Shown: positions 2,671 to 34,432 of the stretch, piece after piece
Position numbering within the stretch: position 1 is the first letter of the stretch
How the letters are laid out: every line of letters begins with the position of its first letter
Source: Stegostoma tigrinum
Taxonomy: Eukaryota
Assembly (NCBI RefSeq): GCF_030684315.1
Contig: NC_081369.1
Coordinates: 9,710,035-9,774,034, forward strand
DNA length: 64,000 nucleotides
Direction: 5' to 3'
Program-made: the position numbers and the translations under genes
Notes under the pieces: generated by a model
Database searches by the model: none
What the model was told of the DNA's origin: nothing
Seen by the model: only the letters and a program-made list of their open reading frames with translations

Positions 2671-2960
2671 ATGAGTAAGAATTAATCACAGTGTAGATGG
2701 CAGAGGCAGGAATCTGGAAGGAGGTATCTATGGATAACTTCGGTCTGCTTGGGCTGTGACTGTTCCAAAGAACTGAAAGCTTCATGTTATCCTTCAGCGT
2801 TCTGCTTCTATATTATCTCTGGTGTGATTGTGGTGCCATTTTATACCAAAGGAGGTAAAAATTCCCCGAATGAAATGTACCCATTTGAGACACAAGGGTC
2901 AGTTGACAAATTGCCCGTGGGTGGCTTGGGAAAAAAAGATCTTTATTGGAGCTGGAGAAA
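2671..2960 (-). pseudogene. Degenerate C1 domain exon (copy 1)
   Basis: tttttgtctgcag| VSPAPIKIF...LTLVSQMGTFHSGNFYLLWYK/NGTTITPEII*KQNAEG*HEAFSSLEQSQP...QIPASAIYTVINSYS |gtatga. Colinear with the copy 2 C1; several stops and frameshifts. Confidence 0.7.
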
Positions 2961-3674
2961 CTGCAGACAAAAAAAAAGCAAAAATCAGGTTTCTGAATAT
3001 ATGGTGAGCATGAACACGACAAAAATGTGTCCTCATCCGCTGCCCGATCCCAAATAAATTACATTATTTTACTGTGGTCCTAAGGGGAGAAACAAGCAAT
3101 CTGTCTAAATTATAAACACAGAGGGATAGTAGCCGATATCGAGCAGCCAGCACAGACGGAGAATCAATATATTAAATATTCGATGGGGTATCGAAAAATG
3201 TGAAGCTGTTGCCAGGAGGACAATCAGAAGTTTTCTTCCCTTACGATAGCGCAGGGCGGGCGCAGTCTCGGGATAAGAAGTCCCTGAAGTAAAAATTAGC
3301 GTTTGAGATATATCCGGTAACATTCTAAGTAAAAACCGGGAGAACTGCGGATGCTGTAAATCAGGAACAAAAACAGAAGTTGCTGGAAACTCTCAGCAGG
3401 TCTGGCAGCATCTGTGAAGAAAATGTCATAGTTTACGTTTCGGGTCTGGTGATCCTTCTTAGATTTTACTGCCGGTAATATTTTAGTTCAAAATTCCATA
3501 CTCCTGAACCAGCTTGTAACTGATGTCCATTTCAAGCCCACCGACTCCCACAGCTACCTAGAATACACCTCCTCCCACCCACTCTCCTGCAAAAATTCCA
3601 TCCCTTATTCCCAATTCCTCCGCCTCCGCCGCATCTACTCCCACGATAAGACATTCCACTCCCGCACATCCCAG

Positions 3675-4544
3675 ATGTCCAAGTTCTTCAAGGGCCGCAA
3701 CTTCCCCCCGACAGTGATCGAGAACGCCCTTGACCGCGACTTCCGCATTTCCGGCAACACATCCCTCACACCCCGCCCCTGCCACAACCGCCCAAAGAGG
3801 ATCCCCCTCGTTCTCACACACCACCCTACCAACCTCCGGATACAACGCATCATCCTCCGACACTTCCGCCATCTACAATCCGACCCCACCATCCAAGACA
3901 TTTTCCCATCCCCACCCCTGTCTGCTTTCCGGAGAGACCACTCTCTCCGTGACTCCCTTGTTCGCTCCACACTGCCCTCCAACCCCACCACACCCGGCAC
4001 CTTCCCCTGCAACCGCAGGAAATGCTACACTTGCCCCCACACCTCCTCCCTCACCCCTATCCCATGCCCCAAGATGACATTCCACATTAAGCAGAGGTTC
4101 ACCTGCACATCTGCCAATGTGGTATACTGCATCCACTGTACCCGGTGTGGCTTCCTCTACATTGGGGAAACCAAGCGGAGGCTTGGGGACCGCTTTGCAG
4201 AACACCTCCGCTCAGTTCGCAACAAACAACTGCACCTCCCAGTCGCTAACCATTTCCACTCCCCTTCCCATTCTTTAGATGACATGGCCATCATGGGCCT
4301 CCTGCAGTGCCACAATGATGCCACCCGAAGGTTGCAGGAACTGCAACTCATATTCCGCCTGGGAACCCTGCAGCCTAATGGTATCAATGTGGACTTCACC
4401 AGTTTCAAAATCTCCCCTTCACCCACCTCATCCCTAAACCAGCCCAGTTCGTCCCCTCCCCCCACTGCACCACACAACCAGCCCAGCTCTTCCCCTCCAC
4501 CCACTGCATCCCAAAACCAGTCCAACCTGTCTCTGCCTCCCTAA
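3675..4544 (+). CDS. PLE C-terminal linker, Cys motif and GIY-YIG endonuclease (open remnant)
   Basis: 289-aa ORF containing PCNRRKCYTC and VVYCIHCTRCGFLYIGETKRRLGDRFAEHL...LGTLQPNGIN. Confidence 0.85.
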   Translation: MSKFFKGRNFPPTVIENALDRDFRISGNTSLTPRPCHNRPKRIPLVLTHHPTNLRIQRIILRHFRHLQSDPTIQDIFPSPPLSAFRRDHSLRDSLVRSTLPSNPTTPGTFPCNRRKCYTCPHTSSLTPIPCPKMTFHIKQRFTCTSANVVYCIHCTRCGFLYIGETKRRLGDRFAEHLRSVRNKQLHLPVANHFHSPSHSLDDMAIMGLLQCHNDATRRLQELQLIFRLGTLQPNGINVDFTSFKISPSPTSSLNQPSSSPPPTAPHNQPSSSPPPTASQNQSNLSLPP

Positions 4545-4766
4545 CCTGTTCTTCCTCTCACCCATCCCTTCCTCCCACCCCAAGCCGCACCCCCATCTAC
4601 CTACTAACCTCATCCCACCTCCTTGACCTGTCCGTCTTCCCTGGACTGACCTATCCCCTCCCTACCTCGCCACCTATACTCTCCACCTATCTTCTTTTCT
4701 CTCCATCTTCGGTCCGCCTCCCCCTCTCTCCCTATTTATTCCAGAACCCTCACCCCATCCCCCTCT

Positions 4767-4794
4767 CTGATGAAGGGTCTAGGCCCGAAACGTC
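4767..4794 (+). ncRNA. Minimal hammerhead ribozyme motif
   Basis: Identical to 1269-1296. Confidence 0.8.
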
Positions 4795-5143
4795 AGCTTG
4801 TGTGCTCGTGAGATGCTGCTTGGCCTGCTGTGTTCATCCAGCCTCACATTTTATTAACTTGCACACTCCTGAAACTAGTTCTTTTCATAATCTATCTGAT
4901 TTGCCGAGTTTCAGATATCAATTCAGGTTTCCAAAGTCTACCATTAATGCGGGTTTCTGACCCGGCTTAGTATTGATGCTGTTTTATGTAGCAGAAAAAA
5001 TGAAACATCAAAATTTGCCACCAAATTACCAGTTTTGCACAGTGTTTCATTGCGAACGGGTTAAAGTGTTTTGTAGCGCGAAAGGTCGCTCATAAGAAGT
5101 GGCAATTGGGCCTCTTGAAATTTCTCGTACCCCCATCACTTAC

Positions 5144-5465
5144 TGCCCAGACATTCCGGTTGGTTCTAGTTCCATTTATAGTAAATTTCCCTGACGGATT
5201 ACTGCACAGTGGTAGATTCCTGAGACCTGAAACGTCGCGTTTCGCAGATCCAAGAAACCAGCTTCTTTATATTTGAGACCAATGTCTTTCCTCTTATCTG
5301 CACTTGTTTGCAGAAATCTATTCTCACTCAGTTTCCACAAACACATCTCGACCCCTGACTTGTCATGAGAAAGGGGCATGATTCATTAAAGCGTGATGCC
5401 TGAGCCCTTTAATATTTCTTCTTCTTTGGGAGTTTGAGATATGCTTTTGGAAGTATCTCGCGCAC
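5144..5465 (-). pseudogene. Degenerate VJ-type V domain exon (copy 1)
   Basis: ttttatttccag| GARDTSKSISQTPKEEEILKGSGITL**IMPLSHDKSGVEMCLWKLSENRFLQTSADKRKDIGLKYKEAGFLDLRNATFQVSGIYHCAVIRQGN, frameshift, then NGTRTNRNVW and gtaagt. Clearly paralogous to copy 2 (GIYHC-VIRQG shared); TAA TGA replace Tyr-Cys. Confidence 0.85.
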
Positions 5466-6711
5466 CTGGAAATAAAATATAAACATCATGTTAGTTAATT
5501 GCAAAATATGTAAAACCAGGCACCTAACAGCACAATTTAACATGGAATTATGAAACAGAAATAAGATAGTAGACCAAAGAACTACAGCTAATTCACCTGA
5601 TGCAGTATTGTGGAAATATATGTTTTGTTTTAATGAGACAACTAGGAGAGACATCAAAGATACCTGTGCTAGTGAGGGCCAGGAGTGATAGGAGCATGAA
5701 CAGAAACTTGACACTGGACAAAACTCCAGCCTATAGTTTCAATGGATGGCTGTCTTCAATGACGGTGTTTGTCGCTGTCAAAGGGGCCTGCTGAGTATTT
5801 AACTTAAAGCTCATCAGCATGACATCAACAATTAGCTTTAGATTTTATTTAACAATTAGCTTTAGATTGCAACCGTTTGGCTATTGGATCGCCCTTGAAC
5901 TCTGCTGTAACACCAGCAGAAAACAACAGGAGATCAAATGTAATCCTTGTATTCCAAGTGAGTTAGTTACAACATCAGTTTGTGGTTCCGTCCCTGCTCA
6001 AGAGCATTAAATGGCAATGTTTTGCCACCAAACCATAAAGGAAACATCATGGGTGACACAGCTTCGCCAACTCAGTGCATTTCAAGGAGTATCTTGAAGG
6101 GAGAACGATAGAAAAGGACATGGTGATGTTTAGAGAGGAAATTGCCCAGCGCAAACCCTTGTGAATTGATGGCACGGCACACATGGCAACGTAATCAAGG
6201 GTCGGAATGTTCAAGAAGCCAAGACGTGATGAGGTCGGAAATTTCCTACACTTCTGTCGCTGAAGGGATCAAAGAGACAGCAAGTTATAACACGGATGAA
6301 GAATGAAAACTTTAATTTCAAGACATTGCTGAATTGGGGATACGTGAAAGTCAGAAAACAGATGATTGACGGTTGAGATGACTCGTTGGGAGGAAAAAAA
6401 GTCGGCAATAAACCGCTAGCTGCCCTCATGTTTACAGAGGGTACAGAATAAGAAACTAACCAGAAGTGCACTTGAGTAGTAAACACTGGAGAGCTATGTT
6501 ACGATCTTAAATGTAGATAGTTTTGCTGAAGTTCAGGTAAGAACTAATATTAGTTTTATTCGCAGTCTGCTTCATCTCAGACAGTTGACAGGGAAGGGAC
6601 TGATATCGATTATGGGACGGTAATCTTGAGACAGAGGCCAAATACAATGGCTTCCTTCCCCAAGATACTGAAATTTTACCTTCGCCCATTGCTTGCAGTC
6701 AGAACACAGAC

Positions 6712-6766
6712 CGAAAGCGTAAAGGCAATGCAGGAATCGCGAGTAAGTCAATGAAATATGTTGCGT
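6712..6766 (-). pseudogene. Possible leader exon of copy 1 (ATG mutated to ACG)
   Basis: ACG CAA CAT ATT... = (M)QHISLTYSRFLHCLYAF G|gtctgt. Exactly 55 nt, phase 1, the same length as the corrected copy 2 leader. Confidence 0.35.
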
Positions 6767-7419
6767 GCTCCTGCACGTAGAAAAACAGTTGTACATTGGC
6801 AGATTGCTAGGACGGGTTTAAAACCTAGTTTAAAACCTCATAATGATAACAGTGTTGATAATTAGTTTGACATTCGAAAATTGTCCTAGAATGCAGAAAC
6901 GAGCAGGACCAAGACGTTGCAGAATTGGGAACACGTGTAAGACAGCAACAATAGGATTGATGGGTGAGGCGACTGTGTGAGAGGCAGGACTGTGGGTAAT
7001 AGACTGTTAGCTCCCCTCAGGTTTAAAGAGGATGCAAAGTGTGAGACAAACTGCAGCTGTATTCAAATAGGAAACGCCAGAGGACGATGTAGCGCAGGCT
7101 TGTAACTGTTTCCAAAAAAATTAACAAACAATTGGGTGCATGCGTTGATTTTGACGTCCTTCCCACGTCTGCATTGGTAACGCTATGTGCTCCGGTTTCT
7201 TCCGACAACCTAAAGATACGTAGGTTAGGTGGATTTGCAATGCTAAATTACCTCGTAGTGTCCAAAGATGTGCAGACTAGGTGGTTAATGTGGAAATACG
7301 GGGAAAGTGTTAGGTGGGCGAACGGTGGGGGGATGGGTCTGAAAATAATAGCCTTCGAAGGGTCGCTGCAGATTCAATTGGTTAAGTCGCCTTTTTTCTG
7401 CACTAAACGGATTATCTGA

Positions 7420-8290
7420 TTCGATAAATTGAACTGGACCCGGGGAATTAATGCCGAGGAATGATGATTGATTACAGAAAGATGTCAATGGTTTGGTTGA
7501 GTGAGCTTTAAACTTGCAAAGGAATTCAATCCGGAGAGGTGAATTTGGAGCAAGCAAATAAAGCAAGGAAATACAATTTAAGCAGGAGGATATTTAGATG
7601 TAAAATAGAAGTCAGAGACTTTGAACTGCATGCCTACAGGTCTTAAAAGTGTGTAAAAGATAGATAAGCTTATGGAATGCTGCCCATTGTTGGATAAGAT
7701 GTGGAATACAGAAGCAAGTAAGTAACGCTGGAATATATACGAATGTGTGCTGCCATAGTGACAGTTTATATACACTCCTGGTGACAATATCGCAGAGCGG
7801 AAATAGTTTTAGTGGAATTACAGACGAGATTTACAGGAATATTTCCATAAATTAAACAGGTCAATTATGAGGAAAGTTTAGATAAGCTCGATTTATTTTC
7901 CTTAGAATCGAAGTGATTCAGGACTGACATAATTGAAGTACACAAAATATTGGGGCCCTTGGTTAGTGTGAACAGGGAAGAACTGTTTCTCCGACTACAG
8001 CGACCCGTTACCAGGGAGTACAGATTTAAGGCGGTCGGCAAAAACAGATCAGAGGCATGGAAAATGTCTTTCTCACCCAGAATGTCTGTACATTCGCTGG
8101 CCAGTTTGCCGGTTGAGACAGAGGCGGAACAAATATCCTTGAAATTTATGCTAACTTTACGTAAGCAGCAGATCTGTTTGTCGTGAAAGGAAGAAGTAAA
8201 ACTAGACTGCTGACCTGGCAAATGGCTAATGTTAAAGGTTATTCGGCGTTTGTGGTTGCAAAGCAAGATAACTTAAGACCGATAACAGGA
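7420..8290 (+). mobile_element. Degenerate CR1 LINE 3' fragment
   Basis: Decayed RT C-terminal motifs (LGLFSLE-like, IEVHKI-like). Confidence 0.6.
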
Positions 8291-8699
8291 TATTTAGACA
8301 TGGACATCTCCTGTTTACACGACTCTTCCCATATGACCACAGATACATGCAAACCTTGTGTAACGGAAGATGACTTCGCCCAGCCTGGAAGACTGGGAGA
8401 AAGCGTATAAAAGAAGGCACATTGAAGATATTAACAGCGATAACTTGAGCAACAATCGAGACCCAAGCATCATGAGAAGGAGACACTGAGCTCAGAACAA
8501 CAACAAGATTATGACTCGTCGCAATGAATCTGGCCAGTTCATCACGTGCAGATGGTATTTAGATTCTAGTCAAACAGCCATATAATATATTGATTGTGTA
8601 CTTACAAAAGTCTAAAGAGTTATAACACAGAGCAAGTTGCATTGGATTCTAATCTGACCGCCTATGCTTTTAACTATTGTAATTTTTCTTTTACCCAGG

Positions 8700-10220
8700 C
8701 ATGGACGTGGGTATCTCTGGCTGGCTGGCAATTTTTTTCCCATATTTCCCGTCCTTAGTTCCCCTGAAGATAATATTCGTAAACTGACTTTTTAAGCCAA
8801 TGCAGTCCTAATGCTGTAGATTGATCCACAATATCCGTAGGGAGGGAATTCCAGGATTTTGAATCAGCATCGTTGAAGGAATGGTGATATATGTCCAACT
8901 CAAATGTTGAGAAGTTTAGAGAGGAACTTATAGGTGGTCGTGTTCCAAAATACCTGCTTCCCTTGTCCTGCTAGATGGAAGAAATCATATGTTTGGAAGG
9001 TGCTGCCGAAGGATCTTCAGCGAATTTCTGCGGTATCTTATGGATAGTGTGCGTTGCTGCTTCTGAGCGTGGATCGTCGGCGTGGATGCTTTGCAGTAAT
9101 ATTGTCTCCAACCATTTCTTAATATCATGTGGGGCCAATCGAATTGGCTGAATACTGGTACCTATAATGCTGGGGAGCATGGGAGGATGCGAAGATGTCC
9201 ATTCACGTGACACTTCTGGTTGAAGATTGCCTCAAATGCTTCACCCTTATTGTATGCACTTATGTCCTAGACTCTTCCATCATTGAGGACACGAATATTT
9301 GCAGATCCTCCTCCTGCCTATTGCTTAATTATCCACAACCATGCACGACTGCACATGGCAGGATTGCAGAGCTTAGATATGATCTGTTCCCTGTGGGATC
9401 AGTTGGCTCTGTTTATCACTTGCTGCTTATGTTATTCGGCAGACAAGTAGCACTGTTTTGAAGCTTCACCGTGTTGAAAGCTTGTTTTCAGATATGCCTG
9501 GATCAATTGCTGACACGCCCTCCCGTGCTCTCCATTAAATCAGGGTTGATCACTTGACTTAAAGTTAATGGTTGAATTGGAGATAGGCCGGATCATGAGG
9601 TTGAAGGTTATGCTGGAGTTCAATTCTGCTGTGTATGATGACCCACAGCACCTTGAGGATTGTCAGTCATGCGTTGTTAGATCTTTTTGAAATCTGTCCC
9701 ATATGCACATTGATAATGCACGCAACACGGTGGAGCCTAGTCACAATTTGAAAGTGGGGCAACAACTCTACAAGGACTATGTGGTGGTCACTTTTAACGA
9801 TACTGTCATGAACAAAGGCAGCTGCAGCTAGCAGATGGGTTAGGATATGGTCAAGTATGTTTCATTCCTCTTCTTGGTTTCCTTACACCTGCTGCAGAGC
9901 CAGACTAGCAGCTCTACCACTTAGGACCCGTCTGCTAGATCAGTAGTCTTACTGCTGAGCCGCTCTTAGGGGTGGACATTGAAATGCCCCACCCATGTAC
10001 ATTTTGTGCCATTGTCATACTCAATGCTTCCTCGAAGAGTTCTTCAACATGGAGGAGTACTCATCCATCAACCAAAGGAAGATGGTATGTGTCAATGAAC
10101 ATGAGGTTTCCTTGCCCATTTTTGACTCAAAACCATGAGGTGCCACAGGGTCCAGAGTCAAAGTTAGAGACTCGGACTATATATCGGTGCCACCACTCTG
10201 GTCATTCTTCTGCTAGTTCC
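8700..10220 (-). mobile_element. Degenerate LINE (CR1/L2 clade) with APE endonuclease remnant
   Basis: GHFNVH (GDFN-like) near 9970-9990 on the minus strand; 3' end family shared with 60640-61370. Confidence 0.55.
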
Positions 10221-11604
10221 AAATAATTGTCTAGATCTATCCTTTGGAATGGTAACAAACAGTTGTATACAATTTAGAGACATGCACCACTTACTCTATC
10301 GAGACCAGTTTTCATTCAGGAAAGGTACAGGCAAGTTCATAGATCTAATAAATCAAATGAATTGTCTATTCTAGAGGTAAGAATACAAATTAAAGACCAG
10401 GCTTTAAATTTTTACTCGAAAAAAGCACAAATGTTTGATGGAGAATAAAGTGATCCGATAAAACATTATTTTAAATTGACTATGCACATTCCTTCCATCA
10501 AATAGCAAATTCCTCAAAAAGGACGTTGCTATTTTATTACAGAAATTTACCTGAGTATTTAAGTAATAACAGGCAATTATAGTCTACATTCAATGACACA
10601 ATAATTTGATACATTACACTGCTTTTCAGCTGACTTTTTAATATTCTTCGGATTTCTTTCACAGCTTGACTGTTCTGGAGTTCTATGAATCTCTTGCTTG
10701 GTACTAAAATTGATGTTTTGGAAGATTGTTAATAGGAGCGGTTTCGCATTTTAGGCTGGTATTCGAAGGATTTATTAGCAGTTTAAAAAAAGTCATAAAA
10801 CCTGAACTACAATACACAACTGCACGCGTCCAACCTAATAATGCCAGTTTTCACAACAATATGAATGCCTCTGGTGATCTCTGGATGACTGATTCACTTC
10901 CCTGCACAGCTCGAGTGTTCACTCCTGTTCGAGTGTAAATGTAGACGCCCTAATCGTTAGTATCAATTCACTGCAAAGTGTTAGCGATTTTACCCTATGC
11001 GTATTACACGGTCCTCAAGTAAAACACTTCTCAGATGCTTAGTTCATTGCCTTTCGTTGTTTTATTGCTGGTGAAACGGAGAAAATGGTGAGTGATAACG
11101 CACAGAAACCATGGTGAATATTGATCAATAAATGCGACCGCGAAAGCATGTAATTACTTCGATTGTTGTATAATATATATTTTAAACGGGCAATGGACAA
11201 ACTGCAGCACGGTTGTAATAATGCTAAAGTTTCCAACCAATTTATAACATGCAAGTAGAACTATGGTATTTTGCTATCTATTTTGATTTCAACGACATTG
11301 TGCTGTTTACGGCTCTTTATCTGTTTATATCAGGAGCGCACTGGGTGTTGGGGAGAAATGAGCCTTCCGCGATAGCTCCCAGTTTGCTTTCGCAAGACCA
11401 ACTTCATTCCTTAGCTCCTGCTGTTCGGTATTCGTCGTTGCAAAAGAAATACTTCCAAAACTGCAAAGATTGGTCATTTACATCTTTAGGAGATGCGCGA
11501 ATGAACAGACCAGTTGTTCACGGCGTTCAGCCGGCTTCAGACTTCGACCTCGGTTGAAGCATTAAATAACTATGAATAGATTTCACGTTGATTCGTGGCC
11601 CTTT

Positions 11605-11730: not shown

Positions 11731-11921
11731 CTGTAGAAACTAACGATGATCTGCAACTATTTCAGGGCTGACGCCCACTCCGTCTCCCATAAACTAGTTG
11801 CGGTCGCAGGATAGCTGCTTGCAAACCGAGAGTGTGTAAAGTCAAATTTGATTCAGTGCTTGCAGCGGAATGATAATTTCAATTGCTGGTATCCGGCCGG
11901 TAAGAAGTAGTTTTCACATAC

Positions 11922-11959: not shown

Positions 11960-12282
11960 CTGGAAAATTCAGAGGCTCGTCGGAAACAGAAACCATTGGT
12001 TCAAGTAGAATTATTCGTCCTTGGAACACTGATCCCATTTCACACTGCCCCCAACTGCTATCGGTAGACTGTAGGTGTGAGGCTCGAAGAGGAACAGCAG
12101 GTCAGACAGCATCCGAGGAGCAGGAAAGACATCGTTTCGTTCCTCTGATGCTGCCTGACCTGCTGTACTTCTCCAGCCTCACATCGACAGACTTTGTCTT
12201 CCAGCATCTGCCACTCTTACTGTCTTCAAGTCACTGTTATCTGTAGTCTTGTATTAAAATCTATTATTACATCATACCTTAC

Positions 12283-12390
12283 CTTTCTCAAACCGTATTG
12301 TGCTGTGCGACGCGGTGATAATCAGGAGCAGTAGAAGTGCTAGTCCACACACCATGAGGCACGAGTAGAAAAGTGGCACATGGACAAAAT
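12283..12390 (-). pseudogene. Transmembrane exon (copy 2)
   Basis: catcttgcag| DFVHVPLFYSCLMVCGLALLLLLIITASHSTIRFEK G|gtaagg. 108-nt phase 1-1 exon; hydrophobic helix with no charged residue. Confidence 0.75.
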
Positions 12391-13223
12391 CTGCAAGATG
12401 ATAATCAATGTCGACATTAACTTGCACAATGTGCTAGGCTTCTGCTTTATCTTTTGCAAAAGGGGCTAAGAACCGTTTACTCGATAAATTCCTGTGTCTT
12501 CCATAATTCTTAGAACTGGAACAGAAAACGATATAGGATCTTGTTTACATAAAGAAAAAGAACATGCTGTTACCCCTTGGTGTGAATATAGACCTCGGAT
12601 TAGTGTCACTGGCTGAGAGTTCGACTAGTTAGTACTACTATGGGGGGGGGGGGGTGACTTATTTATTCAAAGGCTTGAATCTTTGGCATTCTCAAATCCA
12701 AAGAGAATGATTTTCCAACCATGAGAGACCGCAATCTGTAGTATTTGCGGAACAGAGGCAAACCATGAATATGGGGTTCAGGCTGGAGATTGGAGTTGAT
12801 TCAAAAAGTCGGCAATAACCTTATCGCTGGGCGAAGCAGATTCGACAAGCTTTGAGGCTCATTCCTGCTCCTATTTTACACACTATTATTTTAAATGTAG
12901 TGGGCAAATTTGCAAATAATTAAGTTTAACTGAGAATTTTTTTTTTGTATCGAGTGATGTGACCCGGTTTTGACAACATCGGGCTGAAATACATCATACA
13001 TTTGGTAAATGTTGGTTTTCGTTGATCGTTTCCTTGAGTTTTCCATGCTCTGTCCCCATCTTTAATAATCTATGCTAAATACATGAGTGGCCTTTACGAG
13101 TTCAACAGTTATAAACCCGTTTTCGCAGTCCGTGTCGTACCACGATTAGATTGAGAAACGGTGTAGGTGACAACTGCTGGCGCCTGGAGGGAGATGTCAC
13201 TTACCAAAGAGGTATAATTGGTG

Positions 13224-13622
13224 TCTCTGCCTCCCTAACCTGTTCTTCCTCTCACCCATCCCTTCCTCCCACCCCAAGCCGCACCTCCATCTCCTACCTA
13301 CTAACCACATCCCACCTCGACCTGTCCGTCTTCCCTGGACTGACCTATCCCCTCCCTACCTCCTGACCTATGCTCTCCTCTCCACCTATCTTCTTTTCTC
13401 TCCATCTTCGGTCCGCCTCCCCCTTTCTCCCTATTTATTCCAGTACCCTCACCCCATCCCCCTCTCTGATGAAGTTTCTAGGCCCAAAACGAGCTCTGAT
13501 GAAGGGTCTAGGCCCGAAACGTCAGCTTTTGTGCTCCTGAGATGCTGCTGGGCCTGCTGTGTTCATCCAGCCCCACATTTTATTATCTTGGATTCTCCAG
13601 CATCTGCAGTTCCCATTATCAC
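13224..13622 (+). mobile_element. PLE terminal-repeat mini-insertion within the C1 exon
   Basis: Same 3' repeat as the PLEs; TSD aggtataattggtg at 13210-13223 and 13623-13636; contains two tandem hammerhead motifs. Confidence 0.9.
13466..13523 (+). ncRNA. Tandem (30-nt period) double hammerhead motif
   Basis: Degenerate ctgatgaagtttctaggcccaaaacgag followed by intact ctgatgaagggtctaggcccgaaacgtc. Confidence 0.75.
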
Positions 13623-15108
13623 AGGTATAATTGGTGCTTTTCGGGACAGGCTGCGTCTCGACCATAGCACTAGAAACTTCATCTAGTCCCTCGGTGTTCT
13701 TGATTTTATTCGTAAATATTCCGAACATAGATTCAACGCCATTCCTAAACCAAGTGCGCGTGAAATTTTCCGGATAAAACCCAACTGGTTCACAGTTTAA
13801 AGTTAGCGATGCAGAAGAATTCCCTTCAGGTGGCCCGGGGCTAATAGTTACTGGTGTTGGGGCCGCTGCATTTCACAGAATGAACAAAATCAAGTCAATG
13901 TGTGCTTTTGGGAGAAATTGATTATTATTTTTTTCTAAGATCGGACCGTTTCTTTTTACAACTACTTTCACTCGAAAGTGCAACCTCCTTTTATTTCAAT
14001 ATTACACATGCTCTATGTGCGTATGATCCATGTTTCAGACAGATATTGATGACTGGGTTAATTTTGCCGACGTTAATAACGCCAAGGCTTAAGGATAACA
14101 TAGTTATGAATTACAGGTCGAACTCAGCAGGTCTGACAGCACCTGTAGAGAGAAGATAAAGGTAACGTTTCACGTCCTTCTGAAATTAAGTTACTTGGCA
14201 AAGCAGTCGAAATGATTTTTTAAAAACGAAATTTCTGAGAATAAGCTGATTCGATGATTCTTTGCGTGTTTGATACATACTGGAGGATATATCAATACAA
14301 ACAGCCAGGAATATGCACAGTCTTGATCATAAAATGGGCGCTTAATCTGTGTTGGAATAACTCACAGCTGGAGTATGGCAATCAATGAAATATATTACAT
14401 TCAGTTGAATGCCAGGAGATTTCAGTGAAACTGTGCCTCTGTTTATTTTATTTATTGGGGGTTCCTGATTTGACCTCTGTGTCCGAATCTCCAGTTTCAT
14501 GAGTAAACCATTTAGTCAACGATTAGCAGCTCATTGACATTGAATTCCGTAATTCTGTAATTATGTAAGATTCAATTTCAGGCATATTAATCAACCAAGG
14601 CAATGGTAGGTGGAGAACGTGGATCAAAAAATAGCTAAGCACAGTGTACAGTTCGGAGAGGAGTATAACACTAAGGTTCAGAAACAAGTACAGAAATTGC
14701 TAACAAAGTCAGCAGCAGCTGTGGAGCGAAAGCAGAGCTAGCATTTCGGGTCTAGTGACTTCTTCAGGACTGATTGTAACTCCGAAAAAATCGTATACCT
14801 CCTGAGCATGGAATGAGAGGATGGGGCTGAGCACAATGACACAAAGGTTTTAAGTCCCTTATATGCTTGAACACTGTTCCAAATTTTCGCTGTAATTAAG
14901 TTGGTGAATATGTTTGTTGCCTTTGCAGTTCCAGTCTAACTGATTAATCGGTTCATTTTGTAGTGATCTTCGTGTGACGCTACGTAACTAGCTAACAGAT
15001 TTATACAGAGAACAAGGTCGCAAATTTTATTAATTGTCACCTTTATAGTGACAAAGAGGGTACCATAAAATTGTCTCAAAAAGACCCGGTAGATTATGCT
15101 CAACATAC

Positions 15109-15437
15109 TGATTTAGCGTACACAATTAGTTGAGATCCGGTTCCATTGCCTCTAACTTTTCCCTGGCGGATCACAGTGCAGTGATATATTCCAGCATCTT
15201 GGAATGTCACATGCAGCAGCCGAAGGAACCCGCTGGTTTTACTTTCCATGCTAAGCCTCGTTCTCTCGACTGCGCTGTTACGAAGGTATTCATTCTCGCC
15301 ATGTTTCCACCATAATACCCGTACCCAGGTTTGGTGTTGAGAGAGGCGAAATATGCAGTAGAAGGTGATATTCTGTTCTCTGGATACTTTCACTTCTTTG
15401 GCTGCTTGAGACGCAGTGAATGAAGTGCGACCCGCAG
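15109..15437 (-). pseudogene. V-set Ig domain exon with germline-joined J-like motif (copy 2)
   Basis: Acceptor ttatttctgccag. Open frame AGRTSFTASQAAKEVKVSREQNITFYCIFRLSQHQTWVRVLWWKHGENEYLRNSAVERTRLSMESKTSGFLRLLHVTFQDAGIYHCTVIRQGKVRGNGTGSQLIVY shows B-strand Cys, C-strand Trp, DxGxYxC and a GxGTxxxLxV G strand in one exon. Expected phase-1 donor reads G|ctaaat; next GT (gtatgt) is phase 0. Confidence 0.9.
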
Positions 15438-15880
15438 CTGGCAGAAATAAGCAAACGCAAATTAATTGTAAAAGAAATAACAGCTTTAAATAACTACACC
15501 TGTTTTCAGAGGCCTGCTCAGCTATTCCAGAAGACAGCTAAGAGTGAACCACATTGCTGCAGATCACGCAGGCCGAAGCAAGTTAGGGTATCAGATTTCC
15601 TTCCCTGACGTTAAGGATAGAAATTAATTAACAGATAGTTCTTAACAATAATCGACTACCTTTCCATTGTCATCATTACTGACGCTAGCTTCATATTCCA
15701 AACATACTGTTTGAATTCAAATTAAATTTAAAGCTTCATTACAGCATTAGTTATCACTACGATATCACTTTCTCACTAAACGCAATGATAGACCGGAGGA
15801 ACTATAATCAAGATAGCGGAAATATTTTGTTCTAAACCTTGCGAAAAATAATTCAGAAATATTTTATAAATTAGTGATAC

Positions 15881-15936
15881 CTATGTTAAAAAAATTCATG
15901 GAGAATCAGACACAGTAAAGTAGTGTTGCTTATCAT
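15881..15936 (-). pseudogene. Leader (signal peptide) exon of copy 2
   Basis: ATG ATA AGC... encodes MISNTTLLCLILHEFF then TAA. Removing one T from the T7 run gives ...EFFNI G|gtatca, a 55-nt phase-1 leader exon. Lies 443 nt upstream of the V exon. Confidence 0.6.
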
Positions 15937-16524: not shown

Positions 16525-17918
16525 CTTCCCACCTCGTCCGAAACAACATGCTTGCCCGTCACCTTACTGGACCTTTCTGTTTCCATCTCAGGCTACCACC
16601 TACAAACCGATATCCATTTCAAGCCCACCAACTCCCACAGTTACCTGGAACACACCTCCTCCCACCCACCTTCCTGCAAAAAATTCCATCCCCTATTCCC
16701 AATTCCTTCGCCTCCACTGCATCTGCTCCCAGGATGAAGCATTCCACTCCCGCACATCCCAGATGTCCTCATTCTTCAAGGACCTCAACATCCCCCGCCC
16801 CACGCAGTGGTCGAGAACGCCCTCAACCGCGTCTCCCGCATTTCCTGCACCGCATCCCTCACATCCCACCCCCGCAATAACCGCCAAAAGAGGATCCCCC
16901 TAGTCCTTACATAACACCCCATCAACCTCCGGATACAACGCATCATCATCCGACACTTCTGCATTCTACGATCCGACCCCACCACCAAAGGCATTTTTCC
17001 ATCCCCACCCTTGTCTGCCTTCCGGAGAGACCACCCTCTCCGCGACTCCCTTGTCCGCTTCACGTTCCCGTCCAACCCCACCACAGCCGGCACCTTCAAC
17101 TGCAACCGCAGAAGTGCTACACTTGCCCCCACACCTCCCCCCTCAACCCCATCCTAGGCCCCGTGATGACCTTCCATCATCAAGCAGATGTTCACCTGCA
17201 TATCTGCCAATGTGGTATACAGCATCTGCCGTACCCGGTGTGGCTTCCTCTACATTGGGGAAACCAAGCGGAGGCTTGGGGACCGCTTCGCACAACACCT
17301 ACACTTGGTCCGCAGTAAACAACGGCACCTCCCAGTCGTGAACCATTTCAACTCCCACTCCCATTCCTTAGGCGACATGTCCATCCTGGGCCTCCTGCAG
17401 TGCCACAATGATGCCACCCGAAGGTTGCAGGAACAGCAACTCATATTCGGCTTGGGAACCCTGCAGCCCAATGGTATCAATGTGGATTTCATCAGCTTCA
17501 GAATCTCCCCTCCCCCCACTGCATCCCAAAACCAGCCCAGCTCGTCCCTGCCTGCCTAACCTGTTCTTCCTCTCACCCATCCCCTCCTCCCACCTCAAGC
17601 CGCACCTCCATTTCCTACCTACTAACCTCATCCTGTCCCCTTGACCTGTCCGTCCTCCCTGGACTGACCTATCCCCTCCCTGCATCCGCACCCATACTCT
17701 CCTCTCCACCTACCATCTGCTCTATCCATCTTCGGTCCGCCTCCTCCTCTCTCCCTATTTATTTCAGAATCCTCTACCCATCCCCCTTTTGTGATGAAGG
17801 GTGTATGCCGGAAACATCAGCTTTTGTGCTCCTAAAATGCTGCTTGGCCTGCTGTGTTAATCCAGCCCCACACTTTGTAATCTTGGATTCTCCAGCATCT
17901 GCAGTTCCCATTATCTCT
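16525..17918 (+). mobile_element. Penelope-like element fragment (frameshifted)
   Basis: ORF 17188-17559 NVVYSICRTRCGFLYIGETKRRLGDRF; same family as 3509-4861. Confidence 0.9.
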
Positions 17919-27074: not shown

Positions 27075-27270
27075 CCACTCTGCACAAGGGGCAATTTAGC
27101 ATGGCTAATCAACGTAACCTGTACATCTTCAGAATGTGGGAGAGAATCTACGCAAACACAGAGAGAACCTGTAAACTCCACATGGACACGTGCCCAAGGC
27201 TAGAATTGAACCTAAGTGTCTGGGGCTGTAAGGCAGCAGTGCTAACCATAGAGCCAGTGTACCACCCATA
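27075..27270 (-). mobile_element. V-SINE (HE1-like) fragment
   Basis: Reverse-complement similarity to 1592-1790. Confidence 0.65.
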
Positions 27271-27942
27271 ATTCTGCGAGCTAATGCCACACTGGTGCAA
27301 GCTTTTTTTTCGTTCTTAAACCAATCATCTACTAATTGATGGTTAGTGATGTTTAGCTTTGTGAGCAAATCTGGAGGGATGGAATTAGCTTCTCCTTGTT
27401 GTTGGAGTTAGCGGTATCCTGGATATAGCTCATGGAGTTATAATATTTCGTACTGCTAAAGAGTTCCTAAACATTTTACAAGATACAGTAGAATATGAGA
27501 GGGAATCTTGAGGAGGGGGGACAGGCTTCTAACCCAGAAGTGGTCTATTTATGTCTGTTTTCTTACCTTTAACCATTCGTCTATATATATCAGCATGTTG
27601 CCCTCATCCATTGTGGCGTAATTTTGTTTCCCAACCTTTTGTTTGGGATCTTATCGAAAGCCTTCTGAAAGTCTGAATACAAAACATCCACATTGTTCAC
27701 TCTGTGATAATGTCTAATTGGTTTGTCAAGCCATATTATTTCCCTCTATGCACTCATATCATTGCTCTCTAAGAGCCAAGTAATCATATCTTTTATTTCA
27801 GTGCCTCGATTTTTCATACTTTGCCATCGGGCTAACAGATCTGAAGTTTCGTGCTTCTCCTTTCCAAAACAATAGAGTTATATTTGTAACCATCCAATCT
27901 ACAAGGATTATTCTAAATTCAGCAGTACCTTAACATTACAAG

Positions 27943-28590
27943 TGTAACGATGCTATCACTTTTTAAAGGGTTTTTGTTTTATCCTGTTTTTTTTGCAGAG
28001 ATGTTGTAAAGGCAGAGGTGCCAATGAGTCTATGGAGCTAGAAAGTTTAAAAAGGGAAGGGGAACAGCTAGTTCTCCTACTTGAAAGTTTTCTAGTTTTT
28101 TTCAGCTGTAGCAGTCACTCCATGTTTTGAGGCCAGAAGAGCAGTAAGCTTCAGACAAGGATTACCAACTGTGCCAGAGAACTGACTTTCTCTGAAATCT
28201 CTCTGGATGTTGTTTCCTGCTGCATGTAAGAATCCATATTTGAACTTACCTCTTTACCAACAGGTGTGTTTATGGAATGTTACTATATTGGAACAGTTAT
28301 TTAGTTAAGTTATTCTAAATACCTGAAGAAGGGTTTCAGCCCAAAACATTGACTTTCACGCTCATCAGATGCTGTCTGATCTGCTGTGCTTTTCCAGTTT
28401 CACATATATTCATTGTAAATTCCACTTTCTTTTGCTTGCATTTCAGCCATAGTGTTTCAATAAATGCTGTTTTTCTTAAAGCTGTAAGGTTTGACCCGTT
28501 ACATCACACCTACCCTTAAAATAAGAAAAAAGATAGCATCTTGGCTACCTTCTTAAAACATTTTGGGAGGGTCTACCCTGATCCATGACA
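27943..28590. mobile_element. Solo LTR (Gypsy-like) inserted in an old CR1
   Basis: TGTAAC...ATGACA termini, 4-bp TSD CAAG (27939-27942 and 28591-28594), internal AATAAA; CR1 sequence continues on both sides. Confidence 0.7.
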
Positions 28591-29459
28591 CAAGCAATGC
28601 ATCCACCATCACTAAAGTGGCCTCTTTTAACGCTCTAATTAGGTCTCTGGGATTTAACAAATCCCAACAAATTTCAAATTTTCCCAACACTACGTTTTTA
28701 GCAGTACTAACACGTTGCCACCAGTCTCTTGGCTCTCCATTGCTTTTGGGAGATTTCTTGTATCTTTCTCCACGAAGACAGTCAAAGTTTCTCAGTCTTT
28801 TTCCGAATTTCCTATTACACATTCCAATCACTCCCTGGAGAACATTCCCTTTGCTAATATTATTTCCCCCCCTTTATTTTAGATATCCCTAGAATCTTGT
28901 AATGCCTGATTTTATGTTCAGCATCAGTTTAAAAATTGTTACTAAAAACAACTTTGTAAACTTTCAGCCACATTATAAGATTATCCTGACAGTAGGAACT
29001 GCTGATATAACAAGGTGTAGAGCTGGATGAACACAGCAGGCCAATCAGCATCAGAGGAGCAGGAAAGCTGACGTTTCGGGTCTAGACCCTTCTTTAGAAA
29101 TGGGGGAAGGGAAGGGGATTCAAATAAGTAGGGACAGAGGTGGAAGCAGATAGAAGCTGGATAAAGGAGAAGATAGGTGGAGAGGAGACAGATAGGTCAA
29201 AGAGGCGGACTTCACAAGCTTCAAAATCTCCCCTCCCCGACCGATCCCAAAACCAGACCAGCTCATCCCCGCCTCCCTAAGCTGTCCTTCCTCCCACCTA
29301 TCCACTCTTCCCACCTCAAGCCCCACCCCCATCTCCTACCCACTAACCTCATCCCGCCTCCTTGACCTGTCCGTCCTCCCTGGACCGACCTATCCCTTCC
29401 CCTACTCCCCACCTACACTCACCTTTACTGGCTCCAACCCTACCTTTTTGGCAGACTCT

Positions 29460-29900
29460 CCAATCTGACTTTATATAATGGAAAAATGTTCTTCTCGCCA
29501 TGACCTCCACGTTTGAATCCTTTTCTGGAAACACTCTTTCTAAATTACATATCTCCTCATCTGTCGCTATCAGGGATTGACTCACTCGGTATCTCTTAAA
29601 ATCTTAGTATCTTTACCTGCTCCTACTGGCTCACATAAATAAACTTCACCCACGTAAGTAAATTTGTTAAAGAGATCTGGCTCTTTCTCCTCAACCAACC
29701 TCGCATCAGGTTGTAGAGGAGATAATGGGAACTGCAGATGCTGGAGAATTCCAAGATAATAAAATGTGAGGCTGGATGAACTCAGCAGGCCAAGATGCTG
29801 CTTGGCCTGCTGTGTTCATCCAGCCTCACATTTTATTATCTCGCATCAGGTTGTACATCCTTTATAAGCGTTTTAGCTTCTATTTTGCTTACCATTATCA
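29460..29900 (-). mobile_element. Gypsy protease-region relic with nested hairpin mini-insertion (29716-29839)
   Basis: ...KILRDT...SQSL aspartic-protease-like motif; nested piece has TSD ctcgcatcaggttgta (29700-29715 and 29840-29855). Confidence 0.55.
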
Positions 29901-30604
29901 ATTCAAAACATCTCACTTTCTTTTATGGTTTTAATGTTTTTATTTAGAAGATATAATTGTCCACGTCCCTGTAGAAAATGGCTGCACATTTTTAATCAAG
30001 CCTGATTGATGGAAATGAGTTATGCGGAAGCCAGAGCTATTCTGTTGGCTCCACAGCACATTCCAGGGTGCAAGGCGCGTCTTAGCTGAATGTCATAATT
30101 CAGTTTCCTGTCCGGCTACAAACACTTAGCTCAATAGCTTCACCGGTATTTTGATGAAATTAGAAAGTTAAAAAAAGAAGTCTGAATGACCTTTTACGTT
30201 AACTTTATTCTAAAGGTAGTTGAACAGCATGAAGCCAAAACTGGCTAAGTTTTATTGAGCACCAACGTTGTTTTCAGGAATGTGGCTTCATGTATAAAGT
30301 ACAAATCAAGTGCCATTTGTCTTTTTTTGGCCTTCACCCAAAGTGATTTCACCTTTGCTAATATTTAAACATTGGTTAAACGCTACAATGCACTACCACG
30401 GAATTGCATTCTTTTTTGGTCTCAGATGTTATTAAGTTAAAAACTGCAGTTTTAGCGAACATTATTGGGAAACGTCAACGACATTTTTTAACTTAGGAGG
30501 TTGCATTTCTCGTTACATATCTGCAAAGAGTTTGTATTGATGCAGATGATCATTTTTCAAAACTCTTGTTTGTCATTCACATATATGGCTCAAATGGATC
30601 AGGA

Positions 30605-31062
30605 CTATTGTGGTTCATTAGCTTGATGAGCTGGTTCGTTGTTCCGCAGACATTTCATTACCCCGCTGGGTAACATCATCAGTGCAGCCTCTGACGAAGA
30701 GCTGTTGGGTTTTCCTGCCTGTTATTTCGACTCTGGCGTCCGTTGAGTTGGGTTACCTCACTTCCGGTTTCCTCAGCAGTGGAGCATATATAGGATTTAC
30801 CACTTCTTAGTGGGGAACCAGGCCTTTAGGAATTCCTGCGCTTGTCTCTGCTTGGCCAGTCCGAGGACAAATTGGCGCTTTTCCTTATCCATGTGGATGA
30901 AGATGAGTGAATTTGGTCGTGTCTTTTTGTTGCTAGTTGACACTCGTGTACTCTTGTGGCTAATTTTCTTCCTGTCTATCCAATGTAATGTTTGTCGCAG
31001 TCTTTGCAAGAGATCTTGTATATCATGTTGGTCCTGTCCGTAGTGGGTAGCTTTATCATCAA
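30605..31062 (-). mobile_element. Poseidon-like PLE 3' fragment with hammerhead motif
   Basis: QEFLKAWF GIY-YIG C-terminus; ctgatgatgttacccagcggggtaatgaaatgtc at 30649-30682 (-). Confidence 0.75.
30649..30682 (-). ncRNA. Hammerhead motif of the second PLE family (different stem II)
   Basis: CUGAUGA-U-GUUACCC/GGGUAAU stem II-GAAAU-GUC. Confidence 0.65.
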
Positions 31063-32720
31063 TCACTTCATTAATAGTGTCATCATGCCATTACATGGCT
31101 CCACCCTCATGCTGCTACATCTGATCAGTACCCTTTGGGGAGAGTAATTATCACTCAAGGCAATAATGACAGCTTTAAAAAAGTGTTGAGGTGAACAAAT
31201 AAAAAAAACGCAATGCCACAGATGAAATAAAAACCATGAGACACACATTGTCCGCTTGCTGCAATTAGCTGTTCACTTCTGGCTGCCCCGACATTCTTTC
31301 GGACCAGAACTATTGTGGATACAGGCTACTGGTCTTGTTCTAGTACACTATGTGCCAATAATAGATTAACTTTAAGTTGTGCAGGCCTTCAGGGATATGG
31401 CAGAGGCCTGGTCAAATGTATCTGCGAGTGAGTCTGTGTTTGTAGTAATTGCAGGAATCAACGTTGGTTTCACATTAAGAAGGGCTGAGGGTTGCCACCA
31501 AACCTGGATGTGTCACAAACAGCTCCCAATACCTTCAGATATTCAATTTGTGTTTGCTTCATGGCTAACTGTGTGCCCGGCTGAAAGTAAGTGAATTGCT
31601 CCCTCCCAGCAGGTTATATATCTTTGAGCTATTGTGCCAATTTAGCATTCAATGCTGCTCAAAGTTGATGTCACACGATGGCCTGCAGTGTGGACACTCT
31701 GCATGAAAACAGTGAGCTGCTACATATGGAGGATCACCACTGCAGCTAGAGACCTGTGGACAATTCTGTCATGTTTGGGTACATACTGCTCCACGCTGTG
31801 TTATTTCTGACTCCAGCATCTGTAGTTCTTACTATCTCTGTCTAACATGGTTCTGTCCAATACTTCTGCTTATCATGTTGGCTTGAATGCTTCTGCTTCC
31901 GTCGATACCGCCGTCGTGACATTACATTTAAACTTAGTTACAAATGATTCGACAATAATGCCTGATGTTCTTGCATGAATCATCTGGCTATAAATCAATG
32001 CAGAAATATTTTGAAGTTTGTCAAATGGAAATGTAAGAAAAAAGTATTTCTACAGCAGTTGGTCGTTAATGGTCATATCACTTCGTGCTTCGTTAAAAAT
32101 TTCGCTGCGAGTTCGAACATCGCTGATAAAAATAGACCAATTAAGCATAGTAGCATATTTTCTTAGCTAGTTACACTCTCGCTTGGAAGAAACAAAAATC
32201 TTTTGGAGTGCGTTGCTGTAATTGAATGAAAAGTCATAGCCCTCTTCCAAGCTTTAAGAGAATGCAGTGCCCTCTGGTGGAAAAGTGGAAAGACGCAAGT
32301 GTTAGGATATTTGCTAATCAATATGTTCAGCGATATTATTTACATCACGGACCAGGTAGGACTTGAACGCGGGCGTCCTGACTCAGAGTTAGGGACATTA
32401 CTACTGCACCACAAGAGCGTAAAGATTACTATTGTCTCTGTAACCCTACTCATTGAGTTCAATAAACTGTCGGTATGATAGTCTTAGCAAAGCGGTGCAA
32501 GATTAAAATAACGAATTGGTTAATCTCCCGGGATTTTGCACGGGTCAGAAATTATGATTATTGTTAAATTTGCTTTTGCTATCTTTCATGTCACAAATTG
32601 TCTCTGACTCTGCTTTTGCTTCACTTTTGCATTTCTTATTTGTCTCTTCATTCCTTAGCATCTCCGTCTTGGGGATAAGCGGAGTGTGAAAGGCTTAGAT
32701 GGGCAATTCTTAAAATATAT

Positions 32721-32891
32721 TCAGATGTCACACGACACCAGGTTATAGTCCAATAGTTTTTTTTGTTTGAAATCTCAAGCTTTCCGAGTGCTGTTCCTTA
32801 GTCACTTAACCTGACGAATGAGCAGTGCTGAGAAAGCTTGTGATTTCATTTAAACCTGTTGGACTATAATCTGACGTCGTGTGACATCTGA
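32721..32891. repeat. ~170-bp palindromic element (inverted dimer of a third PLE-type terminus)
   Basis: tcagatgtcacacgac...gtcgtgtgacatctga self-complementary; central ctgacga-(gagcagtgct)-gaaagc hammerhead-like core. Confidence 0.75.
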
Positions 32892-33189
32892 CTTTGTCCA
32901 TCCCAATGCAACAGCGAGGGTCTAGGCCCGAAACGTCAGCTTTTGTGCTCCTGAGATGCTGCTTGGCCTGCTGTGTTCATCCAGCCTCACATTTTATTAC
33001 CAATGCAACAGCGACACTTCCATACCATAACATATATTCGGGAGAGCAATTAGGGCTGGACTAGAAAGTCTAATAAAGGGGGTTGGGGGTGCCGGTGCCG
33101 GGGGGAGGGGGGAAGCGTTTTGGCGGGGGATGGTGGAGGGGAGGTGCGATGCTGAACCTAATTTTACACAAAGAAGCTGAACAAGTAGC

Positions 33190-34060
33190 ACGTGTCAGTG
33201 GAGGCACTTTTCGGTGATAGTGATTATAATTCAGTACGATTTAACGTAATTATACATAAGGACAAAGATAGGCCTAAAAGAGAGGCGCTGAATTGGATGC
33301 AGGCCGATTTTAAAAAGACAATACAAGATCTGGCCGAAGTTGGCTCTGATCAATTGCTTGCAGTAAAATCCACATCAGATTACTAGGAGTCAGAAATAAT
33401 AATAACAGGAATAATAGAAGGGCGAGATCACGATTTCAGAGAACCGAGAATGTTGTGCACGTTCAGGTTTGAAGAACGAAGACGGAAGGACGTTTATGCT
33501 ACACAGAGCCCCCGTAGATGCCCTACAGGGGTATAGGCAATGCAGAGAATTACTTAAATAAATAAATCAGGAGATAGGACAGCGACATGAAAAAAAAATC
33601 ATCTGCGGTTAACATTGTGGAATGTCCATAAGTATTTGTAGGTCAATTTGGGGATATCCAGGGAAAGAGTCGGCCCCATTAAAGACGCAAGTGGTAATGT
33701 ATGTGCCGAGCCTGAGGACATAGCGGTGATTTAAAATGTGTACTTTGCGTCTGTATTTACTACAAGAGACTAACGATGTGGGTATAGAAATCGCAGGCTG
33801 CATCTGTGATGTACGTGAAAAAGTAGCATTGGGAAGGAATAGTTACTAGCAATAGCAGCAAGCATGTGCGTGAATAAATCCCTAGGCCCAGTTAGATATA
33901 TCCAGGCTGCTATGGTAGGCAAGGGACGGGCTTTCAGAGGTTCTGATATTAAGGACGACTCATGTGGTTTCATTACTCAAGAACGGTGCCAGGAATAGAC
34001 TACTAGCCAGAAAGTCTAACATCAAATAATGGGGAAACCATTGCGAATGATTCTGAGGTC
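33190..34060 (+). mobile_element. Degenerate CR1 LINE fragment
   Basis: FGDSDYNSVRF...LNWMQADF endonuclease/RT linker motifs. Confidence 0.7.
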
Positions 34061-34137
34061 CAGCAAGAATATAAAATGTAAATGTGAGCTAAAGGCTTAA
34101 ATTATTTTTCTCTATTTTTGATAATTTTGACATCTAC

Positions 34138-34432
34138 CTGTGGAATGAAAAGTAGGGCTGGCGCTGGCTGGGACCAGGACAGAGTCGTGAGGTACGAGAC
34201 ACGAATAAACAGGGTCGATTTGGATGTGTCGTCACAGAGCTGGTGGCTTCATAAAGCCCATCAGAGTTCTGTTATATAATGGTCTGCTCGTCGATCAGAA
34301 TATCCTCATTTTTGTACCCAGAAATTTCAACTTTCTCTGGGTAAAATTCAGCTGTGTTACACACGAGCAACGGAGAAGTGGATGAACCATCACCAGGTGC
34401 AGAAGAGATCACCTTTAGCGGAGCTGGGGGTG
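34138..34432 (-). pseudogene. Orphan degenerate C1 domain exon (copy 3)
   Basis: ctccttcag| APPAPLKVISSAPGDGSSTSPLLVCNTAEFYPEKVEISGYKNEDILIDEQTII*QNSDGLYEATSSVTTHPN/DPVYSCLVPHDSVLVPASASPTFHST G|gtagat. C-x3-EFYPE and YSCLVxH C1 motifs; one stop, one frameshift. Confidence 0.85.

Follow-up and report, generated by a model that had tools for sequence, protein, structure and literature searches.

Probable pseudogenes of a chondrichthyan V(J)-C1-TM receptor family clustered in the zebra shark genome

A 64,000-nucleotide stretch of the genome of the zebra shark Stegostoma tigrinum (RefSeq assembly GCF_030684315.1, contig NC_081369.1, positions 9,710,035 to 9,774,034 of the forward strand; hereafter, the window) carries on its minus strand a series of exons of the immunoglobulin superfamily (IgSF), initially annotated between positions 2,671 and 34,432. 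This span very probably contains three pseudogenes, which lie in a birth-and-death cluster and belong to a multigene family of non-rearranging type I membrane receptors of chondrichthyans. The domain order of the family is V(J)-C1-TM, that is, a variable (V) domain whose G strand resembles a joining (J) segment, a C1-set constant domain and a transmembrane (TM) segment. We recognized two V exons, three C1-set exons and one TM exon, corresponding to three gene copies. Exons were detected by searching the 2,789 stop-to-stop open reading frames (ORFs) of the window, without exception, with a family profile based on 30 intact relatives. The profile matched exclusively the exons described below, with E-values from 3e-47 to 0.0065. 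The V exons of copies 2 and 3 were found with E-values of 3e-47 (ORF 15103-15537) and 2e-19 (segment 5179-5382), and the C1 exons of copies 2 and 1 with E-values of 7e-28 and 2e-12, whereas the C1 exon of copy 3, too decayed for the profile, was recovered by tblastn (E-value = 3e-12). The TM exon (E-value = 0.0065) was found in copy 2 only. The V-like ORF at 15103-15537 (minus strand) also came up in a motif scan and in tblastn comparisons within the window. All sequence searches used individual exons as queries, not joined spliced models. Thus, the set of exons listed in the initial annotation of this DNA, including V exons that contain their own J-like G strand, is borne out.

In copy 2, the V domain and the J-like strand GNGTGSQLIVY lie within one unbroken exon. 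Recombination signal sequences (RSSs) were not found in either V exon; the sole heptamers are CACTGTG sequences derived from Tyr-His-Cys codons and unaccompanied by a nonamer. They are located on the sense strand at 15172-15178 and 5205-5211, just 5′ of the loop resembling complementarity-determining region 3. A cryptic heptamer is known at the same position in VH genes. Since there is no nonamer, CACTGTG is here most likely a by-product of the codons.

Exons and lesions of the three gene copies

Copy 2 (15936-12283, minus strand) is the best preserved, with open V and TM exons, and its exon order, spacing and phase-1 splice frames follow the typical IgSF plan. The V exon (15117..15437) starts in phase 1 after a CAG acceptor. 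Although the initial annotation classed all copies as decayed, this exon is an intact ORF with the canonical Cys, Trp and DxGxYxC residues in place, and copy 2 is broken elsewhere. It matches the Pfam V-set domain (E-value = 2e-8) and is 64% identical to Mustelus protein P0001 (E-value = 1e-43). The C1-set exon (13141..13865) is interrupted by a 399-bp repeat, which separates 13865-13623 from 13209-13141. Its acceptor and donor are intact, and without the insertion it measures 312 nt and is in frame. Pfam C1-set is matched at 13872-13618 (E-value = 1.4e-5, 25.8 bits versus a cut-off of 21), while in the family profile search the first part of the exon scored as given above and the second part (13112-13234) gave an E-value of 4e-7. 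The TM exon (12283..12390) begins 0.75 kb past the C1 exon, directly after this single C1. It comprises 108 nt running open from phase 1 to phase 1, is bounded by a CAG acceptor and a G/gtaagg donor, and encodes a hydrophobic core with no charged residue; its ORF (12275-12433) aligns with profile positions 228-268.

The damage to copy 2 lies in the leader, at the V donor site and in the C1 exon. A probable leader exon (15881..15936) starts with ATG and ends in an AG/gt donor. However, a run of seven T residues gives rise to a TAA stop at 15888-15886, and the length of 56 nt gives the wrong phase for a phase-1 V exon. An alternative leader of the right phase was not found within 1.1 kb upstream of copy 2. 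The donor site of the V exon (15116-15115), positioned from the V/C1 junction LIVHA/APTPL of Mustelus P0001, reads CT instead of GT, and the next GT (15108) is in the wrong phase. The repeat (13224..13622, minus strand) is inserted within the codon at the F-strand Cys position of the C1 domain. The Cys codon at this place is only apparent: two bases of the TGT are the first two of the inserted repeat, and the empty site is TCT, encoding Ser. We compared copy 2 with contigs from public sequencing runs of two samples belonging to one study. These contigs reproduce the leader, the donor region (contig 14125-15315, with 0 differences in both samples) and both insertion junctions; no indels were reported, in the leader or elsewhere. 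Accordingly, the lesions are not errors of the present assembly. The two sampled zebra sharks differ by single bases at 15394, 13775, 11780-11781, 12999 and 13116; the first of these positions falls inside the V exon of copy 2 and the second inside its C1 exon.

The inserted repeat is flanked by a 14-bp target-site duplication, CACCAATTATACCT, present at 13636-13623 and 13223-13210. It is a high-copy sequence: summed contig depth reaches millions over the repeat versus about 10-50 in its flanks. The same repeat of about 400 bp occurs at four further sites of the window (4529-4869, 17544-17914, 1023-1359 and 37307-37647), adjoining Penelope-like ORFs or occupying their terminal parts, along with many fragments. 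Because its full-length copies sit beside or within Penelope-like (GIY-YIG) ORFs, which they adjoin or overlap at 3675-4544 (plus strand), 17188-17559 (plus strand) and 36340-36900 (minus strand), the repeat is probably the terminal repeat of a Penelope-like element or a non-autonomous derivative of one. It carries CTGATGA motifs on the plus strand. Neither a hammerhead nor any other Rfam family was detected in 13100-13700 with an E-value of 1 or less, and no Rfam family reached its gathering score in the window.

Copy 3 (5465-2660, minus strand) has accumulated stops and frameshifts in both of its exons. The V exon (5144..5465) has the same V plus J-like layout, with two adjacent stops (5388-5383) in place of the B-strand Cys region and a frameshift near 5190, upstream of the decayed J-like strand. 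By tblastn, the region 5182-5484 (minus strand) is 41% identical to the V exon of copy 2 (E-value = 4e-20), and the exon shows 50-58% identity to Heterodontus P0006 and Chiloscyllium P0012 (E-value = 3e-27). A YSC triplet that had probably been taken for the F strand of this copy is located after the G strand and aligns with NTYSGMRPTD of Chiloscyllium P0012. The C1 exon (2660..2975), delineated by tblastn with its closest relative, P0045 (61% identity over 46 amino acids), carries three or more frameshifts as well as stops at 2810 and 2789, with Ser instead of the B-strand Cys. Copy 1 is represented by an orphan C1-set exon (34142..34436, minus strand), detected by the profile, Pfam and tblastn. 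The profile matches it in two pieces (E-values of 2e-12 for 34275-34454 and 8e-4), the first of which also matches Pfam C1-set (E-value = 0.0038). This exon contains an in-frame stop (34274-34272), a frameshift near 34213 and a Gly in place of the C-strand Trp. Neither tblastn nor the profile located in the window a V exon for copy 1, whether upstream of its C1 exon or elsewhere; its TM and tail exons, as well as a TM exon for copy 3, were likewise not found there.

The chondrichthyan family and its turnover

To collect relatives, the V ORF of copy 2 was used as a query in an exhaustive phmmer search against 1.84 billion representative sequences, which returned 64 matches with an E-value of 1e-10 or better. 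All single-stretch matches that we checked are chondrichthyan proteins of 250-400 amino acids. They consist of a V-set and a C1-set domain (Pfam C1-set E-values down to 3e-15) followed by a TM helix and often by a tail with tyrosine motifs (e.g. VYATLDL...TVYAQ...TYAALDL...TEYAEI). The family gene plan includes a J-like G strand of the form GxG[ST]xLxV, and many members have tyrosines of the types found in immunoreceptor tyrosine-based inhibitory and switch motifs (ITIM/ITSM). The order leader, VJ, C1, TM and tail is intact in at least 20 chondrichthyan species, in line with the initial proposal that cartilaginous fish have an IgSF family whose members combine a single V with a single C1. Members come from Callorhinchus, Heptranchias, Heterodontus, Mustelus, Scyliorhinus, Carcharodon, Chiloscyllium, Hemiscyllium, Stegostoma, Pristiophorus, Leucoraja, Pristis, Narcine, Hypanus, Hemitrygon and Mobula, and the members of any one species come from one chromosome-sized record. 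The AlphaFold model of a Callorhinchus member, P0009, has predicted local distance difference test (pLDDT) values above 90 over V and C1, followed by a TM helix and a disordered tail.

The automatic names given to these proteins conflict with each other: PTPNS1 (SIRP-alpha)-like, SIRP-beta-1-like, tapasin-related-like, immunoglobulin (Ig) lambda-1-like, NCR3LG1-like/B7H6-like, CD276 homolog, MHC class II beta-like and uncharacterized. In the literature that we searched, no published description of a chondrichthyan V(J)-C1-TM family was found, which agrees with the earlier suspicion that the family is poorly described. Outside chondrichthyans, phmmer with the V exon and word-seeded searches revealed no V-C1 relatives in birds, reptiles, amphibians or bony fishes. 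One bird match, P0215, was rejected as a family member, being a true TAPBPL. The nearest non-family V domains, all weakly similar, belong to turtle multi-V proteins, Xenopus NCR3 and a Polypterus V-V protein. The turtle proteins (P0015, P0178-P0186) are long, contain 4-14 V domains in tandem and are automatically named pIgR-like, titin-like or DSCAML1-like; their V domains were the best non-chondrichthyan matches to the shark V exon, with summed E-values down to 1e-18. A few models within the family (P0018, P0027, P0055, P0072 and P0103) have no C1 and consist of V, TM and an ITIM tail. The V domains of C1-less and V-C1 models are identical or nearly so in the pairs P0055/P0064 and P0072/P0108. 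The C1-less models reflect either skipping of the C1 exon, yielding NKp30-like or PRARP-like V-only isoforms, or incomplete gene models.

To place the three copies, we built V and C1 trees, which included family members only and no outgroup families. Both the V and the C1 of copy 2 group with Mustelus P0001, Scyliorhinus P0003 and Heterodontus P0160/P0164, to which they are 63-66% identical, and the V branch of copy 2 has a length of 0.30 versus a tree median of 0.21. The V of copy 3 pairs with Chiloscyllium P0012 (support of 93 in the Shimodaira-Hasegawa-like approximate likelihood ratio test, SH-aLRT) inside a clade supported at 98, and its C1 groups with Chiloscyllium P0012/P0045 at 99. The C1 of copy 1 forms a long branch whose placement is not settled by the C1 tree. 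Thus, copies 2 and 3 represent different old subfamilies with intact counterparts in other sharks. Such a mixture of old subfamilies, in which decayed copies have intact counterparts elsewhere, is the pattern expected of birth-and-death evolution, as the initial annotation had supposed.

The window also holds part of a member that is not decayed. The last coding exon, encoding the cytoplasmic tail and stop, of the intact annotated gene P0201 occupies 59182..59384 (minus strand; 67 of 67 residues), the remaining exons being past the window end. The initial statement that all copies are decayed therefore stands for the three copies inside the span but not for the window as a whole. P0201 is a Stegostoma tigrinum RefSeq model automatically named NCR3LG1-like isoform X2; its tail is rich in Lys/Arg and Cys and has no ITIM. 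It belongs to a subfamily distant from copies 2 and 3 and conserved one-to-one from the chimaera Callorhinchus to sharks. Apart from this exon, the part of the window from 35 to 64 kb consists chiefly of Penelope-like and long interspersed nuclear element (LINE) debris. LINE reverse-transcriptase ORF fragments sharing a conserved C-terminal block (35610-36335, 50227-50796, 54954-55367 and 55771-56253, all on the minus strand) take up a large share of this region.

Decay of the copies, predicted function of relatives and alternative explanations

Judging from their sequences, the three copies themselves are without function. Copy 2 would correspond to genes still intact in Mustelus, Scyliorhinus, Heterodontus and Heptranchias and would have lost its function fairly recently, presumably knocked out by the leader frameshift, the loss of the splice donor, the retroelement-type insertion in C1 and the loss of the F-strand Cys. 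Copy 3 is probably an older wreck of a subfamily that is intact in Chiloscyllium, and copy 1 appears to be a solitary C1 relic. The intact long-tailed relatives are predicted, from their protein sequences, to be inhibitory receptors in which a germline-encoded V domain on a C1 stalk would bind a ligand. By analogy with SIRP-alpha, phosphorylated ITIM tyrosines would recruit SH2-domain phosphatases, and short-tailed relatives would act as non-inhibitory partners. Inhibitory signalling is suggested because of the tail motifs, which were spotted by eye.

Several observations weigh against interpreting the span as three pseudogenes of this family. The trees are based on about 100 columns for about 100 rows, and the placement of copy 2 has moderate support (SH-aLRT of 81-87). 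The likeness of the copy 2 leader to the leaders of P0012 and P0045 was judged by eye alone. A cytoplasmic tail or ITIM exon was not found in the window for any of the three copies by motif scan, by tblastn with the tails of all relatives or by the profile, searches in which short exons are readily missed; short-tailed family members also exist. Finally, the two contig samples come from the same study, and one of them possibly represents the assembled individual.

Alternatively, the family could comprise chondrichthyan co-orthologues of tetrapod SIRPs, in which case the locus would be a SIRP pseudogene cluster with one C1 fewer. We consider this possible but doubtful. The commonest NCBI names of the relatives are 'tyrosine-protein phosphatase non-receptor type substrate 1-like' or 'SIRP beta-1-like'. 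In the ESM Atlas, the two nearest clusters by language-model features are both SIRP-alpha (0.97; 208-209 of 256 features), and when the family profile was compared with PDB over the V-C1 stretch, the match to SIRP-alpha d1-d2 spanned both domains (62 bits, E-value = 5e-30). Moreover, long tails of the family alternate xTYAxLxL and TEYAxIQ motifs, as does the SIRP-alpha tail. However, the relatives have a single C1 and not two, and the same profile gives 65 bits for an Ig lambda-type chain and 54 bits for UrIg2. The ectodomain of the family is a generic antigen-receptor-type V-C1 pair, whose profile shows much the same degree of similarity to Ig light chains, to SIRP-alpha and to UrIg2. The top 50 Foldseek matches of the P0009 model are not SIRPs but Fab (antigen-binding fragment) light chains and T-cell receptor (TCR) beta chains, all with E-values of about 1e-14, and since these scores are nearly uniform, the structure search does not separate the families. 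The nearest non-family V domains are of the Xenopus NCR3 type or from the turtle multi-V proteins rather than SIRP d1, and tails with ITIM plus ITSM are widespread among inhibitory receptors. No tetrapod SIRP was retrieved in word-seeded searches, a method possibly unable to reach them. The initial view that the family fits neither NKp30 nor SIRP-alpha holds as far as domain content is concerned, given the C1 exon on the one hand and the single C1 on the other; distant co-orthology with SIRP is the doubtful alternative just described.

Another possible but doubtful reading is that the family is a separate, undescribed germline-joined VJ-C1 lineage and not SIRP, combining an NKp30-like V, an Ig-like C1 and an inhibitory tail of its own, and present throughout Chondrichthyes. 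Such a lineage would date from the era of the antigen-receptor precursor and form a fourth relic beside UrIg, NKp30 and SIRP, the cluster recording its turnover.

It is very unlikely that copy 2 remains functional or has a working allele, its lesions being tolerated through an alternative donor or leader, splicing of the insertion or a disulfide-free C1. Such a possibility is suggested by the V exon (109 codons) and TM exon, which have uninterrupted reading frames and retain all canonical residues, by the intact acceptors and other donors, and by the V branch, whose length is near the tree median. On the other hand, four independent lesions are found in one 4-kb gene, all of them in the contigs of two samples; the nearest usable GT donor breaks the frame, and no candidate leader of the right phase was found in the 1.1 kb upstream. 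Because the insertion lies inside the F strand, its clean removal by splicing would depend on splice sites present by chance. Derivation of the exons from germline-joined Ig light-chain (IgL) or TCR genes is hardly credible, even though sharks possess germline-joined IgL clusters, some relatives are automatically named 'immunoglobulin lambda-1 light chain-like' and both the structure model and the profile match Fab light chains best. Unlike IgL, all close relatives possess a TM helix as well as a cytoplasmic tail, and in copy 2 a separate TM exon lies 0.75 kb past C1. The copies are 50-66% identical to the family, whereas their identity to Ig or TCR chains is about 20%. Moreover, the J-like strand reads NGTGSxLxV rather than FGxGTxLxV, and there are no RSS relics in the V exons.

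Taken by itself, a cluster of three pseudogenes represents ordinary decay within a multigene family. The locus adds little beyond the family except that it shows turnover by pseudogenization, in part via a very abundant repeat; the interest lies in the family, and for function it is the intact paralogues that matter. Genes in which an unsplit VJ exon adjoins a C1 domain are sought as living kin of the gene into which the RAG transposon inserted, a search that 'has been of great interest' (PMC12227049). A V(J)-C1-TM family that is large, occurs in every shark, ray and chimaera genome examined and figures in databases only under contradictory automatic names merits phylogenetic and syntenic placement beside SIRP, UrIg and NKp30.

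Comparison with known receptor systems

Ig light chains and TCR chains share the V-C1 ectodomain with the shark family and are the best structural neighbours of the P0009 model. They differ in that V and J of the family share one germline exon without RSSs, and in that its members possess a TM segment and a signalling tail of their own; sequence identity is only about 20%. NKp30 (NCR3) likewise has a non-rearranging VJ-type V domain, with a G strand of the GxGNGT type, and Xenopus NCR3 (P0122) is among the nearest non-family matches to the V exon of the window. The similarity is nevertheless weak (E-value of about 1e-4, versus 1e-39 within the shark family), and NKp30 has only a V domain, whereas in copies 2 and 3 a C1 exon follows the V exon. 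PRARPs have an ITIM-type tail, and those of chicken seem to have a single V domain. PRARP is listed among the non-rearranging joined-VJ IgSF genes (PMC10751288, PMC11599192).

UrIg and UrIg2, the elasmobranch non-rearranging VJ-C1 'antibody' genes (PMC12227049, PMC10751288), resemble the present family in having a germline-joined VJ exon followed by C1 and in their occurrence in cartilaginous fish. In the comparison of the family profile with PDB, UrIg2 (9dmx) was one of the best matches (E-value = 3e-35). However, UrIg2 is a disulfide-linked homodimer of chains with ten IgSF domains (V, C1, then C2-C9) and has been reported from elasmobranchs only (PMC12227049), whereas the present family is V-C1-TM with signalling tails, is a large multigene family and is also found in the chimaera Callorhinchus.

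A relationship of the SIRP family (SIRP-alpha, beta and gamma; PTPNS1/SHPS-1) to the antigen-receptor precursor has been discussed (PMC2785349). SIRPs resemble the shark family in that a V domain that does not rearrange and ends in a J-like G strand precedes C1-set sequence and a TM segment, in that inhibitory forms have a multi-ITIM tail, and in the pairing of long-tail and short-tail members. The differences are that SIRP has the order V-C1-C1, while the shark relatives have one C1 according to both Pfam and the structure model and the TM exon of copy 2 directly follows C1, and that the shark family was found here in Chondrichthyes alone. In plan and tail, SIRP is the closest named membrane receptor, although sequence does not single it out.

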